64,000 nucleotides of DNA from sequence record MK774614.2, one strand, 5' to 3'. The position numbers and the translations under genes are program-made. This document shows, piece by piece, positions 3,069 to 54,132 of the stretch (its first letter is position 1; every line of letters begins with the position of its first letter). The notes under the pieces are model-generated. The model did not search any database, had not been told where the DNA came from, and saw nothing but the letters and a program-made list of their open reading frames with translations.

Positions 3069-3431
3069 ATGAATATTTTCGATATAGTAGAAGCGAAGAA
3101 GTCTAACATTAGCAATGAAGATTTTCAGAAGCTGTGGGACACTGTTACCAATAAACATGTCCGTGCTGTGTTGAAGGAAGTGTCCTGTAAACTGGGTGAT
3201 CGAGATCCGAACGGAAATGAATTTAGCAAAGCTAATCTTCAAAGCGCGCTAAAGAACATTTGTTGTTTCGAAAGTATCCGGTTTGAATCTTACAAGGAAA
3301 GTGCAGCTGTACTAGCTATGATCAAGGTCATCTATGAACAGGCACTGTATTTGAAAGATCCAGATGTGGTCTATAAAGAACTCGAAACTCATTTCGAGCA
3401 CTATTATAGTTTGTTGGACAAACCGTTCTAA
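3069..3431 (+). CDS. Hypothetical protein
   Basis: 120-aa ORF followed by a hairpin terminator. Confidence 0.7.
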   Translation: MNIFDIVEAKKSNISNEDFQKLWDTVTNKHVRAVLKEVSCKLGDRDPNGNEFSKANLQSALKNICCFESIRFESYKESAAVLAMIKVIYEQALYLKDPDVVYKELETHFEHYYSLLDKPF

Positions 3432-3440
3432 ATAACAACG

Positions 3441-3466
3441 ATGGATCTGGGGAAACCTGGATCCAT
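3441..3466 (+). terminator. Intrinsic terminator
   Basis: Imperfect atggatctgg/ctggatccat hairpin followed by a T-rich run. Confidence 0.6.
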
Positions 3467-3506
3467 TTTCTTTCTGTTTTATTTTAGTATAAATTAAAGA
3501 GGAACT

Positions 3507-3965
3507 ATGTTTAAATATCTATTTGGGAAAATGCGTCAAAATGATGAAACGGGTGAAGAAACGCATCGCGAAGACGCACTTGCAATTACCCGCCGTTGTG
3601 ATTCGTATCAGCATCGTGACATGGCACGTGATATTTCAATGATTCCGTTTAATGGCGGGTTTTGTGGTTCTGCATTAAATTTTGATAACGCCTATCTTCC
3701 AGGACAGTTTAACGGAGAGTCAGTTTCCTGTCGGGTTAAAACCGAAGGAGATGCAAAGAAGATTGAAGAGTTTGTTAAAGAAACAGATATCTTCGTTTGT
3801 AAGTTCGGTAAATCAGAATACCTGGTTGCGCTCTTTATTCCAAAAGGTAATACGGTTGCTGATCCCTACAATAAAGAGATCAAACCGAATGATTGGAAGA
3901 AAGTTTCTCCTGAAGAGTTTTGTGCGCTCTTTAAAGAAGTCTTTGATAATCCCTATTACATGTAA
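3507..3965 (+). CDS. Hypothetical protein
   Basis: 152-aa ORF with GAGGA RBS. Confidence 0.75.
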   Translation: MFKYLFGKMRQNDETGEETHREDALAITRRCDSYQHRDMARDISMIPFNGGFCGSALNFDNAYLPGQFNGESVSCRVKTEGDAKKIEEFVKETDIFVCKFGKSEYLVALFIPKGNTVADPYNKEIKPNDWKKVSPEEFCALFKEVFDNPYYM

Positions 3966-3968
3966 TAA

Positions 3969-3998
3969 AGCTAGAGAACCCCAAAGGGTTCTCTAGCT
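3969..3998. terminator. Terminator between convergent genes
   Basis: 13-bp stem agctagagaaccc-caaa-gggttctctagct; poly-T downstream. Confidence 0.75.
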
Positions 3999-4013
3999 CA
4001 ACATACTTTTTTT

Positions 4014-4694
4014 TTAAATTGTTGCTGGATAATAAACATCTAACGTTTGCAAAGTTAAATTAGGGGCTTTGAATTTTGCTGTTCCGATGGTTCTTGCTTG
4101 AATTGTTTTTGTTGCGAATCCTTCCACGTTAGGATTCACATCCTTGACCAATGTAGTTAATCCCACAGAGTGTTGACTATTATTGACAAGAACCTCCTCA
4201 GGGATCTCTATATCTAATTCTATCTCGTCCCAATAGATTTCCCCTAATGCTTTCCAGCAATCGTCTACAGTGTGCTTAGTGGGGTTTAATAAGAGCACAT
4301 ATTTGTTTTGATCATTGATGTGATAAAGTCCAAACGTATATGCCCCATTACCAATCCCTGCTTCAAACTCCACCAAGGTCATTGAAGGAACATCAATAAA
4401 ATGATCTTTATAAATTAATGGTAAATCGACCATCTTCAATTCTGCATCCGCGTAAAAGTATTCAGTGCGTCTTGATAGAAAACAAGCGATCAATTTTCCA
4501 TTGGGAAATAACGTCGGTGGTTCTATTTGAACATCTTCGTTTTTAAGGTCGTAATATTTGGCAATCGCTTCGTCGTATTTCTTCAGGCCTTTTTGAGCGA
4601 TCATCTTATCGGCAAGATCAGCTAAATACAGTTTTACCGATGAGAATAACGGATCTTTAATCCGCTTACTTCTAACAATCTTGTCAGTTATCAT
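4014..4694 (-). CDS. Hypothetical protein (lone minus-strand gene, possibly late/structural)
   Basis: 226-aa ORF with no competing plus-strand ORF; bounded by a hairpin and a divergent promoter. Confidence 0.7.
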   Translation of the reverse strand: MITDKIVRSKRIKDPLFSSVKLYLADLADKMIAQKGLKKYDEAIAKYYDLKNEDVQIEPPTLFPNGKLIACFLSRRTEYFYADAELKMVDLPLIYKDHFIDVPSMTLVEFEAGIGNGAYTFGLYHINDQNKYVLLLNPTKHTVDDCWKALGEIYWDEIELDIEIPEEVLVNNSQHSVGLTTLVKDVNPNVEGFATKTIQARTIGTAKFKAPNLTLQTLDVYYPATI

Positions 4695-4745
4695 GATTTA
4701 ACACCCGGTTCGCAATTATAAGGTATTTGTTCAAACAATCAATCT

Positions 4746-4770
4746 CTATAATTTTTCAAGTAGATATTAT
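4746..4770 (+). promoter_or_regulatory. Putative phage early promoter
   Basis: ctataatttttcaagtagatattat; matches the repeated motif. Confidence 0.7.
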
Positions 4771-4810
4771 CTTTATGTACGAATACCGGGATTATTCATT
4801 AGGAGGACAT

Positions 4811-5230
4811 GTGTTTACTGGACCAGAATTTGATTACTACTACGAAGGAACGGTTGATGAAAATATCAGAGCGTTCTTTGGGAGTAAACAAGCGATGCAT
4901 GAAAGTAAACTGTTTCGCCAAATGGAATCGGTGAAATTGGAAATGATAGTCTTACAAGGGGATTTGGAAATATTTCAATATAAACTAGGGTTTATTAATC
5001 AATGTCGAGTAAATAGTTTTAATCGCTCTCTAAACGCGTTTATTGATCTTTGCGATATCCACATGTGTTTTGCTACTAAGCACGGGTTGGAAGTGATTAC
5101 AGAAGCATCTAGACGCATTAGAAAACGGTTTAAACGTTTAATAGCTCAACTTTACGATTTCAGTAAAGAAATCGAATTATTGGATCAACAATTTAGTATA
5201 AGGAATAAACATGACTCTCATTGCATTTGA
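4811..5230 (+). CDS. Hypothetical protein
   Basis: GTG 4811 follows AGGAGG and lies downstream of the promoter; the longer 4727 start overlaps the promoter. Confidence 0.65.
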   Translation: MFTGPEFDYYYEGTVDENIRAFFGSKQAMHESKLFRQMESVKLEMIVLQGDLEIFQYKLGFINQCRVNSFNRSLNAFIDLCDIHMCFATKHGLEVITEASRRIRKRFKRLIAQLYDFSKEIELLDQQFSIRNKHDSHCI

Positions 5231-46547: not shown

Positions 46548-48427
46548 ATGAGTAGCCGTAAACCAACTAACTTCACCTTGCTTGACCCAAATACATTTCC
46601 CTACCGGACGATGATCCCGGTAACGAGCGGGGATGCGTTCGAAGGTCAAACAACCAACCTCCATGAGGAAGGCCTCTATTCTACTAAGATCTTTGGTCGA
46701 GTAGGGACAGAAGAACGTGACAATACTGAATCTTACATTGACACCGTCCTTCCTATTTTTAACCCCACTTATTTTAAAGCCCTTGTTTCATTAAAAAGCA
46801 TGTATGCTGAAATTATCAAGGGCAAAGTTTATGCGGTATGGGACCCAACTGAACGGGATTTCATAAAATCCAATGTACTCGAAGGTGACACGGGATTCGC
46901 GTTCTTTATGTCTCATTTTGGGGAATTGGATCCCAAAGAAAATGAGTCCTTTAAACGCAGTCAGAAAATCTCGGTGGTAAAGAAGTTCTTTGACCGAGCA
47001 CTTCATACTCGTATTCCCGTTTACCCCGCAGGTCTTCGTGACATTGAGATCGGTCCAACTGGTCTAGTAACTGAATCTGAAGTGAACGATTTGTATCGTA
47101 AGCTTTTTTACCGCACTCGCTCACTGAACATCAAGCACCCCGATCCCAGTGATCCTGTTTATGACAATATCCGCTGGGGTGAACAAGAAGCGCTGAATAA
47201 CATTGCTGACTACTTCTTTGGTATCCAAGAAGGCAAGCGCGGCATGATGCAGCGTAAAGTCGCCAGACGTTCTATCCACTCTGCAACACGAAACGTCATT
47301 GTCTCGCGTAAAGTTTCTGTGGAGAACATGGATGATAACGTGACGGGTGATCCTAACTCGACCATCATTGGTTTATACCAAGCGTTGTTGGGTTTTTCAT
47401 TAATTGCCCAACATGAGTTACTAAACGGGTACTTATCAGAAGTCTTTACACAAGGGATTACCTCAGCGAGGTTGGTCGATCCTAAGACATTGGAAAGTGT
47501 CTATGTAGAAGTCGATGCCTATACCGTAGACAAATACACGTCAGCCGATGGTATAGTTTCCCTGTGCAATGGGTTCAGTAACCCTAACTTGAGAAACAAA
47601 GAAATTCGAATTGCTGGCCATTACCTGGGATTGGTGTATGATGACGGTGAGAAAGTAGCACTGGTTCATGATATCAATGACCTTGGGGATAACCTGAATA
47701 AAAAGTTTGTAAAGCCGGTCACGTACATGCAGTTCTTTTATATGCAAACAGCACGGGCCATTGAGAAGAAGATGCTCCAAGTAACTCGTTATCCGATTAC
47801 CGGCATCGGGTCGATCTTTCCTTCTCGGGTATTCATTCGTCCAACTAACGCCACCTCCAGTCATCGGATTTTGGTGGACTTGGATGGGAGTGAAATTGGA
47901 CAGTTCCATTTCTTCCCGGAGTACTCAAAAGAGGTCAGTTACTTTGATGGCATGTCCATTGCCAACATTAGACTGGGATTAGCTGGTGGTGATTTTGACG
48001 GTAAAAACGGTTGCCGCTTTAGGCAGTAATGTCTATTGAAACTGTGCGGAATAAAGCAAGGAGTCTCTCCATTTAGAGATAACTTGAACCGAAGGCTAAG
48101 AGTAATATCTTGGTCAGGGGCAGAGCGTAGATGGTGATCCCTTTCATTAAAGGACTATAATCCATCCAAGAGGCCGCACCATCCTACTGGGATGAAAACG
48201 TACGCCGATACCCGGAGTGATCTGGGCGTGAAGATAAAAAACTTCACTTTAACACATTGGACCAACTATCAGCAAACAGCATCATGGCAGATGACTCTAT
48301 CTATGAGATCTCTGAACTCTTTGGTAAACGAATCTTTTATATTTCAGGTGCAGGTGATTTTCTTTATGATCCTGTTCAAGAGCCTCACGAATTCCTTCTG
48401 CGTTCACTCACAAACGGATTATCATAA
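46548..48427 (+). CDS. Virion RNA polymerase beta-prime subunit (phiKZ gp180-like); exons 46548-48002 and 48260-48427
   Basis: Splicing restores GGDFDG/DQLS (catalytic DFDGD) and gives 540 aa ending at TAA 48425-48427; also EGLYSTKIFG, QVTRYPI. Confidence 0.9.
48003..48259 (+). mobile_element. Group I intron (ORF-less, 257 nt) in vRNAP beta-prime
   Basis: Exon-terminal U, terminal G; P1 CGGU/GCCG; P10 GGUU/GACC; P3 GUGCGG/CCGCAC; P7 GAGCGUA/UACGCC; P8 CAUCC/GGAUG. Confidence 0.88.
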
Positions 48428-51400
48428 TGCTCTCTAAAGCACAACTTGAACTGTTCGGTATCTCAGGTACCGAAGCACTCCCCTATTCTCAGTTTCTGCG
48501 AGTATGGGGAACACGAGAACGGATTAATGATATTATTAATCCCAAGTATACACCCATTGGTGATGTGATGTTGCCGCGTAACGCGGTCTTCCATTATCAA
48601 CAACAACTTCCTAATGAAACGGGTCCGAGTAATCAGGCTTCCTTTATCAGTAATTTTGATAAACGGATCAACATGTATTTTTGGCCTGACTTTGATGTGG
48701 TATTGGGGACTTATAAGAAAGTCCCTTATAACTTTAATGCCAAGATCCGGGAATATGAAGCAGGACACTTTAATTACTATCGTGCGCGTAATTACCAAAC
48801 GGTGATTAACAAAGACTATGAGTTGCTTGTAAACAACATGGCAATGAGTCAAGTCCCGGTTGTTTATCGTCAGTTAACTGTCTTTACACCATTTCAAAAG
48901 CAATACAACATTTTGCATAACTTGATCTTGGCAGTAAACCAGTTCGCGCAACACGACATTCATCAGTTTGTCGAATTCAAGCTTCCCCGGTCTTTCCCAA
49001 GTTACCGAATGCTGTTTGAGTCCTTTAAACGGTATCGGAAGTTCTTTAAAGACGGTGAAGTGTCTCGGTATGAAAAAGAAGCGTTGAAAGTGTTTCAAGC
49101 AGATGGCAGCTTCTGGCTACTGGATTTGTTTGGAATCTTGATCGGCTATGATTTTGCAGAGTTTTCGCAATTTAACAAATTGACGGATAAAGCAAAGGGT
49201 CAGTTAGAACTGGTCTTTACTTATGAAGGAAAGTGCTGGATTGTTAATCTTCAAACGTTGATTAATTTGATCAGTTACTCTGATAAGGAAACCGACACTG
49301 AACCGAGCAATGCTAAGTTCATCTATTTTAAACGTTTCTACCTCGCTCTCATAGGACTTGTGACGCCACTGGTAGAGGAAGTAACACATGAATCCAGTAC
49401 CCAAGAAGAAGTTGTTTCAAATCAAGGAAACGAAAATCCCAAGGACCGGGATGATCAATCGCAGTCAAGCAAAAAAGGATCTGGAGGAAAGTCTGAAGAA
49501 GCTTCCCAGCTGGATGCTAATTCTCGTGATCGTAGTCTGGCTGACCTTTACACCAGTGGTAAAGGATCTGGTCATGTGGATAATCCACCCGCCGAAAGTG
49601 AGGGAGGAGGAGTTGTTGAGGAAACTTCGGATTCCGTTACCGACGAAGAGTCTCCCGAGCAACTATTCTCAACAGACGTCGACGACAGTGTATTTGAGCA
49701 AGCCAGTATTGAAAACGCGTCTGTAAGTGTCGGTAAGAATGTCTACAGCCCAACAGTGACCATTGAACGTCTGATGGAACAACGGGCACGCAAAGGGATG
49801 TTGACAACCAAAGAGCAAGAGTTCTTTACCAAGGCTGCCGAGAGTTATAAGGATATTGTTATTGGTGGGAGGACACTCGAAGAAATCGTCTCCATCTCCC
49901 ATAAAGACCTGGTGATGGCCCCGGAAAAGATTGCTCCAGACTCCCCGGTTATTTATGACAAATCTGTGCTTCAATCCCGTACGCAACAACTGGGGACTGA
50001 ATACAATCAGAAGTTCCTAGAACGTGACATCATGAGTGCGATATTGAACGCCGCCCAATTAGGCGGTGTTGCCTTGTTGGATCTGGATCGGGAAAGTATC
50101 GTCACCGCTGATTCGGCGTATGATGTTTACACAATGAAGTTCCAACCCGTGGGTGAAGGGAATCAATCCACCAGACGTTTTCGTATCCCTAAGGTAGCTG
50201 AAGACAATACCTTTACTATCAATGGCGTAAAGAACTATGCGCAATTGGTTCGAGTAGAAGCCCCAGTGAGGAAGATTGGGAAACGTAAAGTCAATATCAC
50301 GTCTTATTACGATAAGCGCTTGATGATTGAACGTTCTCCTTATCGTGCTGATGACTTTGGTGCTTGGTTGAAAACAAACATTCTTCAACGCAGTTATGTA
50401 GACAAATCCATCACTGTCCAGTTAGGTAGTTTTGCTCCCTTTAAGAAAGAAGCGTGTTGGTATTACTCTGTTTTGGCAGAGCGGTTTAAGTCCATCACTA
50501 TTCGTGATATGGTCCTTAACTTTGACACCTCTATTTATTTGACTGAACATAAAGAGTGGAAAAAACTCTGCAATGATGAAAGTTGGGTAATTGGGGAGGA
50601 ACACGGTAAACCGATTCTGATCGATAACGCCGGTTTGATTACGGTGGATGGGGTTGAGAAAGGCTATCTGGAAGAGCTCATTGGACTGAATGTGGAAAAG
50701 GCACCTGTTCCCAATTCCACTATTTATGTCAATGGATTTAAATTCCAAAGTGTGGTTGTGCTTTCTTATTGGATTGGTTTCACTGAGCTGATGCGTCGAT
50801 TAAAACCGATCTATCGGACGGTAGAACCCGGAACACGCCCTAACTTGACCAGTAACGAATACCTGATCCAGTTTGCCGATGAACGTCTTGTGTTGGATAG
50901 ACGAGACACGTTAGCCACGCTGGTGTTTTCTGGGCTGGCTAAATTACCGGGACTTCGAAACTTCTCACGCGCGCAGCTTGATGATCCGAATGTCTGGTTC
51001 TCTATTGTAAGTGACCCGCGGGTGAAACCGTCTCATTTTAAAGAGATGGAACAGATGTTTGATCAGTTTATCGATCCTATCACTGCCCGGGAGTTGACCA
51101 GACGCAAGTTCCCCTTGGAATTAGACAAGTTGGTTATTCGGGCTATTGAGATGCTCCTTAATAATGAAGCATCCCATGAAGTCGAAATCTCTGAACAGCG
51201 TTTGATCGGCTATGAACGTTTTGCGGGTCATGTTTATCGTGAGATGGTTAAGAGCACTCGTCAATTTAGGAACAAGCCAGGCGGAAATAAAAAGACGTTT
51301 GACTTGAACCCTGAAGCGATCATGATGAACATTTTGACGGATGCGTCTTGTCAACCAACTGAAGAAGTGAACCCCATTCACCAGATCAAACAAACTGAGG

Positions 51401-53179
51401 AAGTGACCTTTGGTGGGACTTTTGGTCGAAGTGATCGTGCGATGGTGAGACGGACACGGGGCCAACTTCCTAACTACGAAGGGATTATTTCTGAAGCAGG
51501 GAAAGACTCTGGTAAAGTTGGCTTTATTTCCTATCTGACTTCTGATGCAAAGATTGTTGACTTAGGTGGAAACGTAGACACGTCTCTTCCAACCACTGAT
51601 GCAGGTCGACTTTCTGTTACATCAAACCTTCTTTATGGCTCAACACGGGATGACAGTAAACGGTAAGATGCCCTCTATATACATTGATGTCTATAGAGAA
51701 CTAATTGCCCATTCACTGGGAAACAAGTGAATGCATTAATCCTTAATTGCTGGGAAGTGCTCTGTGATGCTTACGCTAAAACGGAATAGGAAACTATAGA
51801 CGGAACAGTGTGAAAATGTAAGCGGAGAGACAGTCAGCAGCGGAGCACCTACGTACATTTGCGATAAATGGATAGGGTGAGCGTTCAACGACTAGGGGTG
51901 AAACTCCCCGTAGCTGGGACATGGAATGTTCCTACCAAACAGGATTACCTTACTGTGTTGCTGAAGAAGCAACAATACAGTTGGTTGAAATATAGTCTGC
52001 TCCTTATGGCGACATAAGGCGGGTGCCAGGTATCGCACCGGGTCTTAGGATAAGACTGGACAGAAGGCGTTGTTCTCGACCGTGCAGCTAAGTCAATGGA
52101 TGGCAACAGACTCCTATCAGGTTTCTCCACTTCGTACTTCTTATGACAGTGCAGTGGGATATCGTAACTTTGAACTTTATACCTCTGTTGCAAAACAAGA
52201 CGGAGTGGTGAAAGAAGTTACAGCAGATGGGATTATTGTTGAATACGTTGATGGAACAGAAGGGAAGTTTTTCTTAGGATATGAAATTGGAAAAGGTGCG
52301 GGTGAATATCACAAACACTTAAAAGTCACTGATGTAAAAGTAGGACAGAAAGTTCCCCAGGGGATGATTGTTGCGTGGGATAGTTGTTTCTATACCCGTG
52401 ATAGTTTAGATCCTACCCGTGTTCTGCTTAAGACTGGGACACTTTCTCGGATTGCCTTGATCGAAGACCAGTTTACCTTTGAAGACTCCATTGGGATTAC
52501 GCAGGAATATGCCAATAAGAACAGCACACCGTTCTTAAAGCAGAACCATTTCAGAGTTGAATACGCGCAAGTTGTAAAGATGTATTGTAAAGTAGGTGAT
52601 GAGGTAGAATACGACCAAGTCCTTGCTGATATCAAAGATCAAAGTGCTGCAATGTTCGATGATGAATTTAGCCCAATGGCAGGATTGGATCGACTGGGAA
52701 TCAAGCAGGTCAAAGCAAAACAAGCAGGTCGGATTGCCAAGATTGAAGTGTTGTATAATGGCGATTACGATGATGCGGAAGAGTCTGTGAAACAGTTGAT
52801 TAAACAGGCCGATGGTGTTCGCAGTAAAGCGGCTAAATACCGTAACCTGTATGCACCAGATGGGAACGTAGGTGGGAACACCTCCATCGGTAAATCCAAG
52901 GTCTATCCGAATACCTGTACTGTTAATATCTACATCGAATCAAGTTTGGTGACCACCGTAGCGGATAAGTTCGTGGTGGGGAACCAGATGAAAGGGACAG
53001 TTGGCTTTATTTATCCCAGCCAAATCACGACACCGGATGGTCGCAAAGTAGACATTACTTTCTCATTGAAGTCGCTCCTTAACCGAATGGTATTGAGTCT
53101 TCGTGATAAATTGGTGGCTAACGAAACTAACCACGTGTATACGTCCAGAATGATTTCGAAATATGGGAGATATGAGTAA
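48427..53179 (+). CDS. Virion RNA polymerase beta subunit (phiKZ gp178-like); exons 48427-51664 and 52068-53179
   Basis: Splicing gives 1449 aa with junction DDSKR-S-LFSTVQLSQ, in register with E. coli beta DDANRALMGANMQRQ; DKFVVGNQMKG, FEDSI, DSGKVG. Confidence 0.88.
51665..52067 (+). mobile_element. Group I intron (IA2-like, ORF-less, 403 nt) in vRNAP beta
   Basis: P AAUUGCUGGGAA (51745), Q GUCAGCAG (51833), R GUUCAACGACUA (51883), S GAAAUAUAGUC (51987); P3 UAAUCCU/AGGAUUA; U before and G at the splice sites. Confidence 0.9.
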
Positions 53180-54132
53180 TGGCTAATAGCGAGAAGGATG
53201 TTTCTGTTATCAATGGGATTCAGACCACCCTCTCGCAACTTTCTCTGTACAAAGGCCGTGTAGACGGCCTTTTCGGAAAAGGTTGTCGAGATGCTGTGAT
53301 CCACATGGTAAATGTGGTTTATCCCGGCAAGGTGATGAAGTACCCTGAAAATAATTATGAAGCAAAAAGCGTTTACACGTTTCTTCAAACTGTATTGGCA
53401 CAAGTGGGTCTGTACACCATTGCGATTGATGGGAAATGGGGAAACGGAAGTGCAACTGCATTTAATGGGCTAGTGGATCAGTACCGCACTGCATCAACAA
53501 CCCAGGGTGGAGACCAACCAGTTCACTTAACGGAAGCGCAGTTTAAAGCGATGTTGCCATCTGCTAACTGGGATAAGGTCCCGGTTTATCTTTCGGCTAT
53601 TAACGAAGCAATGGAAGTGTTTGATATCACCACCCCGCTTCGTAAAGCTCACTTTATGGCACAAGTTCTTCACGAAACTGCGAATCTGAAATACAGTGAA
53701 GAGATTGCGAGTGGGAAAGCATATGAGGGTCGTGCTGATTTAGGTAATACTAAACCAGGTGATGGCCCCCTCTTTAAAGGTCGTGGTTTGCTTCAGTTGA
53801 CGGGTCGGGATAATTATCTGAAATGCCAAACTTATCTGCGTCAACGTTTAAACGATCCCCGTTTTGACATTACCTCTGATGTAACCAAAGCCAGTCAGTT
53901 GTCAACCAATCCGCTTTATGCGGCCCTTGCCTCTGGGTATTTTTGGCATTCCATTAAGCCAAAACTCAATGCCACAGCAGACAAGGACGACATTTACTGG
54001 TGTTCTGTTTATGTCAATGGCTATGCTAAACAAACTCATCCCTATTACCCTGATAGAGATAAAGAACCGAATCACATGAAAGAACGTGTTCAAATGCTCT
54101 CTGTCACAAAGAAAGCGTTTGGTCTGATTTAA
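53179..54132 (+). CDS. Modular endolysin: peptidoglycan-binding repeats plus GH19 catalytic domain
   Basis: Two PG-binding-like repeats (VDGLFGKG, IDGKWGNG); HFMAQVLHET; YEGRADLGN; FKGRGLLQLTGRDNY. Confidence 0.88.
   Translation: MANSEKDVSVINGIQTTLSQLSLYKGRVDGLFGKGCRDAVIHMVNVVYPGKVMKYPENNYEAKSVYTFLQTVLAQVGLYTIAIDGKWGNGSATAFNGLVDQYRTASTTQGGDQPVHLTEAQFKAMLPSANWDKVPVYLSAINEAMEVFDITTPLRKAHFMAQVLHETANLKYSEEIASGKAYEGRADLGNTKPGDGPLFKGRGLLQLTGRDNYLKCQTYLRQRLNDPRFDITSDVTKASQLSTNPLYAALASGYFWHSIKPKLNATADKDDIYWCSVYVNGYAKQTHPYYPDRDKEPNHMKERVQMLSVTKKAFGLI

Follow-up and report, generated by a model that had tools for sequence, protein, structure and literature searches.

A probable group I intron without an endonuclease gene in the virion RNA polymerase beta-like gene of Aeromonas phage CF8

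Introduction

Group I introns have already been described in the gene considered here. In phage PhiPA3, an intron in the virion RNA polymerase (vRNAP) beta gene, together with its HNH endonuclease gp210, has been studied experimentally, and the insertion lies after a conserved DD corresponding to E. coli beta D675 (PMC11620839). For the homologue in 201phi2-1, proteomic evidence has been cited and two long RNA reads are spliced at this place (PMC11512511); the 201phi2-1 record gives gp273/274 as a joined protein identified by mass spectrometry, and notes interruption by a mobile element. The published family already covers this gene in 201phi2-1, in EL (as split genes) and in PhiPA3.

The DNA that we analysed, a window of 64,000 nt, shows 100% identity with Aeromonas phage CF8 (MK774614.2), a phiKZ-like jumbo phage of the genus Chaoshanvirus. 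We put the probability at roughly 0.92 that the vRNAP beta-like mRNA of CF8 contains a group I ribozyme intron (IA-type) at positions 51665-52067. The element is a new, unannotated, endonuclease-less member of the published family, sharing its host gene at a site 10 nt away. The GenBank record of CF8 gives CF8_0227 and CF8_0228 as two separate hypothetical proteins with no intron annotated, and introns are not mentioned in a paper that discusses CF8 (PMC10673249).

Comparison with known systems

Two insertion sites have to be distinguished. Site A immediately follows the DD codons and is the site given for PhiPA3 (PMC11620839); site B, where the CF8 intron is found, lies after DDxKR plus one base, 10 nt downstream of A. 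The PhiPA3 intron (gp210, in gp211/gp209) resembles that of CF8 in its host gene, a homologue of phiKZ gp178, in the DD..KR motif, and in a layout of 5' splice site, P1 loop and a guide directly before P2. The two ribozymes are homologous (nhmmer with the CF8-family profile, E 2.1e-16, profile positions 4-195), although the PhiPA3 core is only about 49% identical to that of CF8. They differ in the insertion point, right after DD in PhiPA3 (GAU/GUC) and 10 nt downstream in CF8 (GGU/GCC), and in the P1 loop, which holds a 330-aa HNH endonuclease gene in PhiPA3 but a 32-nt hairpin in CF8. Without an endonuclease, the CF8 intron is related to the PhiPA3 gp210 type but is not a full mobile unit of that kind. 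It adds an endonuclease-free member to a family whose role in interference competition between PhiPA3 and phiKZ has been shown.

The introns of 201phi2-1 (gp273/274) and EL (gp186/gp187) share gene and intron family with CF8 and are likewise short and ORF-less, but they occupy site A and their cores are only 50% and 57% identical, respectively, to that of CF8. Closer to CF8 is an unannotated intron in Klebsiella phage phiKp_32 and Raoultella phage VB_ZK_P1, which has site B, the GCC guide and the Ser junction in common with CF8 and a core 73-74% identical. Unlike that of CF8, this intron is 1434 nt long and carries in its P1 loop a 350-aa ORF with HNH_3 and NUMOD1 domains, homologous to PhiPA3 gp210 over its full length (29% identity, E 2e-36). 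The ORF is recorded as a "hypothetical protein" in both phages (3955-5007 in the phiKp_32 sequence, our L004, and 3955-5007 in the VB_ZK_P1 sequence, our L005), and would be better described as an intron-encoded HNH_3 and NUMOD1 endonuclease.

More distantly, the T4 td and nrdB introns (IA2) are, like that of CF8, phage protein-gene introns with P7.1/P7.2, P9.1/P9.2 and similar Rfam scores. Their cores are detected weakly by the intron-family profile (E 6e-7 for nrdB and 2e-6 for td), but there is no blastn similarity, they sit in different genes, and their ORFs lie further inside the intron rather than in the P1 loop (annotated I-TevI and I-TevIII positions).

The host gene and its junction

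Both CF8 ORFs flanking the gap match the PHROG 3148 "RNA polymerase beta subunit" profile (1424 positions), in agreement with the record annotations of the homologues, and the identification as vRNAP beta, the phiKZ gp178 homologue, made in a preliminary description of this DNA is borne out. Direct checking of the sequence also confirmed the two ORFs reported there: the first (48427..51666, 1079 aa) has the C-terminus ...YGSTRDDSKR*, and the second (52070..53179, 369 aa) begins about 400 nt past it. Exon 1 (48427..51664, plus strand) matches profile positions 2-1053 (E 2.7e-272) and is colinear with the gene of AerS_266 (L003 2448-6794), a member of the same genus in which the gene is uninterrupted and encodes 1448 aa. 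Exon 2 (52068..53179, plus strand), also aligned to AerS_266, matches profile positions 1056-1422 (E 3.8e-122).

Exon 1 ends with ...DDSKR followed by U, the first base of a Ser codon, and exon 2 starts with CG, finishing that codon, and then reads LFSTVQLSQWM... through to the stop codon. The 5' boundary reads U51664 / AAGAUG... and the 3' boundary ...GAAGG52067 / CG-UUG. When U51664 is joined to C52068, the result is TCG (Ser) and an open frame of 1449 codons with no internal stops, just as had been proposed from the U/G junction. The predicted spliced junction reads ...AAACGGT followed by CGTTGTTC..., and the tryptic peptide SLFSTVQLSQWMATDSYQVSPLR would span it. The DNA alignment to AerS_266 puts the CF8 insertion exactly between ...GAC AGT AAA CGG T and CG TTG TTC..., and the intron-less alleles of AerS_266 and ZPAH34 (same genus) read DDSKR-S-LFSG at this point. 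At the protein level, the predicted spliced product and the AerS_266 protein share 74% identity; their alignment of 1449 columns has a single gap, and the junction itself is ungapped.

The preliminary description had also aligned the junction in register with E. coli beta. A BLASTP comparison between AerS_266 and E. coli RpoB returns this register weakly (E 0.12), with DDSKRSLF set against DDANRALM at D674/D675, and it agrees with the published alignment (DDANRALMG; PMC11620839). A phmmer search of PDB chains with the C-terminal part of the AerS_266 protein gave no match, so the register depends on the weak BLASTP alignment and the literature.

It might be argued that the gene is truly split, such that the RNA of the gap is a dead intron remnant and two polypeptides assemble into the polymerase. 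RNA polymerase subunits of jumbo phages are naturally split elsewhere (PMC7598289), GenBank gives two separate CDSs in CF8, PS1 and EL, and an in-frame TTG at 52070 and an ATG at 52100 are present. We regard a split gene as very improbable nonetheless, as the break falls in codon phase 1 within the conserved DDxKR-S-LF, the catalytic core of the intron is intact and kept by compensatory changes across diverged phages, and reading the sequence by eye disclosed no Shine-Dalgarno sequence usably spaced before 52070 or 52100. Moreover, the homologous interruption in 201phi2-1 corresponds to a single joined protein by mass spectrometry (PMC11512511). With a spliced gene as the preferred reading, the annotation of CF8, PS1, PS2, phiKp_32 and VB_ZK_P1 would be corrected, the two "hypothetical proteins" being one subunit (1449 aa).

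Two observations on the annotation of this region may be added here. The GenBank start of CF8_0228 is the ATG at 52100, 10 codons into exon 2, which begins at 52068. The next gene (53179-54132) encodes a protein that matches the endolysin family (PHROG 181, E 1.4e-53) and contains a PG_binding_1 domain.

Identification of the intron

The insertion (51665..52067, plus strand, 403 nt) is absent from AerS_266 and was recognized both by Rfam and by nhmmer. With default gathering thresholds over the whole 64,000-nt window, the Rfam group I model RF00028 (Intron_gpI) gave no match. In a 901-nt search, it matched 51671..52019 over the whole model (1-253) with 41.6 bits and E 4.8e-9. The gathering score of RF00028 is 50 bits, which explains why the default scan missed the CF8 intron and why it is recovered in E-value mode only. 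Under this same test, T4 td and nrdB, whose status as introns is proven by experiment, come to 40.3 and 35.7 bits, so the gathering threshold misses real phage introns, while homologues of the CF8 intron exceed it in PhiPA3 (67.8 bits), in metagenomic contig L011 (55.9 and 52.2 bits for its two copies) and in phiKp_32 (51.9 bits). Family-wide searches were done with nhmmer profiles, and the intron-family profile matches the CF8 intron with E about 1e-103.

No ORF above 50 aa lies within the intron, the largest being 50 aa, and the element was therefore correctly called ORF-less and lacking an endonuclease gene in the preliminary description. The exact boundaries given there likewise hold, on the full-model RF00028 match, the AerS_266 alignment and covariation. 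Within the gap, we found no promoter- or terminator-like sites on the coding strand; the minus strand has the sole promoter-like match, in keeping with chance expectation.

The idea that the gap is some other mobile element (an insertion sequence, a MITE or a group II intron) or an artefact of assembly can be given hardly any weight. The group I model is matched over its full length, the same insertion recurs at this site in isolates of independent origin and in metagenomes (PS1, PS2, L010, L013, L009), and the gap holds no transposase or reverse-transcriptase ORF.

Structure and covariation

A group I intron is also what the predicted fold of the CF8 RNA suggests. In the covariance-model alignment and the RNAalifold consensus, the core helices P3-P9 and the P, Q, R and S elements appear in canonical order, P3/P7 pseudoknot included. 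All positions below are on the plus strand. The 5' strand of P1 (51662..51666) consists of the exon bases GGU and the intron bases AA and pairs with the internal guide sequence UUGCC (51705..51709). The splice-site base U51664 forms a wobble pair with G51707, and two A-U pairs extend the helix on the intron side. The P1 guide is thereby corrected to the GCC at 51707-09 beside P2. The GCC at 51670-72, the first after the splice site, was rejected as the guide, being absent from PS1 and L010, whereas the P2-adjacent GCC is universal. Between the two strands of P1 lies a variable hairpin, L1 (51670..51701, from RNAfold), in the position where relatives have the HNH gene; the small L1 hairpins of CF8, PS1 and L010 are three different ones.

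P2 (51710..51733) is a hairpin of CAUUCACU and AGUGAAUG, its register in CF8 taken from RNAfold of CF8 alone, with compensatory changes in 8 of 8 consensus pairs across nine introns. The 5' strand of P3 (51738..51743) pairs with its 3' strand (51941..51946, from RNAalifold); 53 of 54 cells are canonical and three pairs show double changes. The P4-P5-P6 domain (51747..51885) is present in the Rfam alignment and, with compensatory pairs, in RNAalifold. P4 is at about 51748-53/51834-39, in a register that differs by one step between two rounds of the consensus-structure analysis, P5 is extended, and the stems of P6 are 51840-42/51883-85, 51846-49/51876-79 and 51856-60/51866-70. In P7, the 5' strand ACGACUA (51888..51894, the R element) pairs with the 3' strand UAGUCU (51993..51998, the S element), and all 54 cells are canonical; the outer pair is A-U in eight introns and G-C in FishSpeaker. 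P7.1 (51895-98/51906-09) and P7.2 (51916-22/51926-32), together spanning 51895..51932, come from RNAalifold and show covariation, with double changes in 6 of the 7 pairs of P7.2. P7.1/P7.2 peripheral hairpins are typical of subgroup IA. The long hairpin P8 (51947..51985) is also from RNAalifold. The last region (52000..52057) contains P9 (52002-08/52013-19, with a GCGA loop), P9.1 (52022-26/52035-39) and P9.2 (52041-45/52053-57).

Every element that the preliminary description lists, P3, P7, P7.1/P7.2 and P8 among them, can be located in the CF8 intron. Its label "IA2-like", with a comparison to T4 td, is plausible given P7.1/P7.2, P9.1/P9.2 and the weak detection of the nrdB and td cores.

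The terminal intron base, omega-G, is at 52067..52067 and closes a conserved 3' tail, GGACAnAAGG. All seven site-B introns end in ...GG, after which C and one more base (CG, CT or CA) finish the Ser codon, the codons at the seven junctions being UCG, UCG, UCA, UCA, UCU, UCA and UCA. P10 pairing is weak and inconsistent among relatives, and since it is not conserved we have left it out of the evidence.

Covariation was assessed in an alignment (A4) of nine homologous introns, with the RNAalifold consensus and a hand-added P7 as the structure (97 pairs). Canonical pairs fill 93.4% of the cells, and 55 of the 97 pairs show changes on both sides. Sliding the 3' partners by one to three columns lowered these values to 37-46% canonical and 9-24 double-change pairs, and none of 500 column shuffles equalled the observed values. 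These counts are favoured by the structure having come out of the same alignment, although that structure coincides with the independent Rfam architecture. Compensatory changes from the eight homologous introns occur in all of the CF8 helices.

Proposed splicing and mobility

From these pairings, we propose that the GGU at the end of the 5' exon would pair with the guide UUGCC (51705-09) to form P1 with its U51664-G51707 wobble, and that a free guanosine bound in P7 would attack after U51664. The terminal G52067 would then take the place of the guanosine in P7, and the exons would be joined, giving the UCG Ser codon and a single 1449-aa protein. We infer that CF8 RNA would splice in this way without a protein helper.

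A need for a phage or host cofactor, such as a maturase or chaperone, or inefficient splicing that regulates the amount of vRNAP, seems unlikely to us, though with better prospects than a split gene. In favour of such a reading, P1 is short, with an exon part of 3 bp, and P10 is weak. In nucleus-forming phages, transcription takes place apart from ribosomes (PMC12908238), and this may have some bearing on folding. Against a cofactor, the core and the stabilising hairpins (P2, the P5 extension, P7.1/7.2, P9.1/9.2 and the P9 GNRA loop) are present and conserved in the CF8 intron. The T4 td and nrdB introns, which are related phage IA introns, self-splice in vitro.

The HNH homing-endonuclease gene found in the P1 loop of its relatives was either lost from the CF8 intron or never part of it, and the intron is therefore presumably no longer mobile by itself. 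It presumably persists because the gene stays functional only through exact excision.

Relatives and the two insertion sites

Homologous introns in the same gene were found by blastn and a pattern scan in Aeromonas phages PS1 and PS2, in phiKp_32 and VB_ZK_P1, in Shewanella phage FishSpeaker, and in Pseudomonas phage EL and its relatives. Four metagenomic contigs (L009, L010, L011 and L013) also have homologous introns in the vRNAP beta gene. Another metagenomic pattern match, L012, was rejected as a family member on a marginal nhmmer score (E 0.043), and a pattern scan of IMG/VR for the R...S elements returned phage EL itself and nothing else. Within the homologue pool of roughly 240-290 jumbo phages, we took allele states from the matches listed; among these, the gene is uninterrupted in most close relatives, including AerS_266, ZPAH34, ACP1, AVP1, OBP and N1M2. 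In AerS_266, the intron-less motif carries a U at site A and at site B alike. Such a patchy presence is the pattern typical of mobile introns.

In every family member, the three bases directly 5' of P2 serve as the guide and are complementary to the last three exon bases, with a U-G wobble at the splice site. Site B is occupied in CF8, PS1, PS2, L010, L013, phiKp_32, VB_ZK_P1 and one of the two L011 copies; in 7 of 7 introns the exon ends in GGU and the guide is GCC, and the junctions all encode Ser (UCG, UCU or UCA). Site A is occupied in EL, FishSpeaker, 201phi2-1, PhiPA3 and the other L011 copy, in all of which the exon ends in GAU and the guide is GUC. P1 thus covaries with the insertion site, GCC/GGU against GUC/GAU, over 12 introns.

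Metagenomic contig L011 (JACCDR011225896.1) has tandem introns at 3288-3667 and 3678-4061 (380 and 384 nt), flanking a 10-nt mini-exon, CCAAAAAGGT. The predicted double-spliced product reads ...STIDD-PKR-S-LFSGVQ..., and the ORFs on either side (1060 and 376 aa) are intact. The P9-P9.1 regions of the two introns are identical, hinting at gene conversion or a recent duplication. The site-A copy is 70-78% identical to site-B introns and 49-60% identical to other site-A introns, which suggests that a change of site took place recently. PhiPA3, 201phi2-1, EL and FishSpeaker, the distant relatives, all have the intron at site A, but the intron tree is poorly resolved (support 35-42), so the direction of any switch is inferred.

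These patterns allow us to suggest, tentatively and at somewhat less than even odds, that the site-B introns derive from a site-A intron of the PhiPA3/EL family that moved 10 nt downstream. Such a move would take essentially one change in the guide, from GUC to GCC, retargeting the intron from GAU to GGU, and might have occurred by reverse splicing, for example. Both lineages could then occupy a single gene in tandem, on either side of a 10-nt mini-exon, as in L011. If this is so, a site-B intron, even one without an endonuclease, might change the site targeted by gp210-like nucleases of co-infecting phages, and a resident site-B intron might give passive immunity in phage-phage competition. 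With two sites 10 nt apart and matching guides, the family is a natural test case for a change of site by a group I intron, and equally for the shielding of a gene by a resident intron against a competitor's homing endonuclease.

Some further matches lie outside this gene. The PS1 (MN032614.2) and PS2 records each match the CF8 intron by blastn in two places, one of which is the vRNAP beta gene. Short matches of 78-80% to the CF8 P4-P6 are found in unannotated stretches of the Vibrio phages JA-1, VCO139 and JSF3 (about 69 kb) and of Aeromonas phage D3 (37104-37167). They may represent more group I introns, as yet unannotated, that lie in unrelated genes.

The upstream beta-prime-like gene

The gene upstream, the counterpart of phiKZ gp180, bears the PHROG 2986 label "RNA polymerase beta subunit", yet has the DFDGD motif of the beta-prime catalytic site. 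A 257-nt insertion at 48003-48259 of the window splits this motif between DFDG and D; the 5' exon ends in GGU and the last base of the insertion is G. Without the insertion the product reads ...GGDFDG-DQLSANSIMADDS..., which keeps the register of AerS_266 (542 aa). The annotated CF8_0225 and CF8_0226 also belong together as parts of a single gene. A nearly identical insertion is present in PS1. Rfam gave no group I match to the 257 nt, although by eye a fold resembling P3/P7/P8/P9 can be sketched. The insertion is probably the "first" intron of the preliminary description, in which the vRNAP beta element was the second.

In the corresponding gap of the beta-prime-like gene, Rfam does find a group I intron in EL (L007 21-393, 51.1 bits), FishSpeaker (L006 114-478, 53.9 bits) and phiKp_32 (L004 208-538, 37.5 bits). 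This intron is immediately preceded by an annotated HNH endonuclease ORF in EL and FishSpeaker. The mini-exon downstream of the EL, FishSpeaker and phiKp_32 introns starts ...DQLS or ...EQLN, as it does in CF8.
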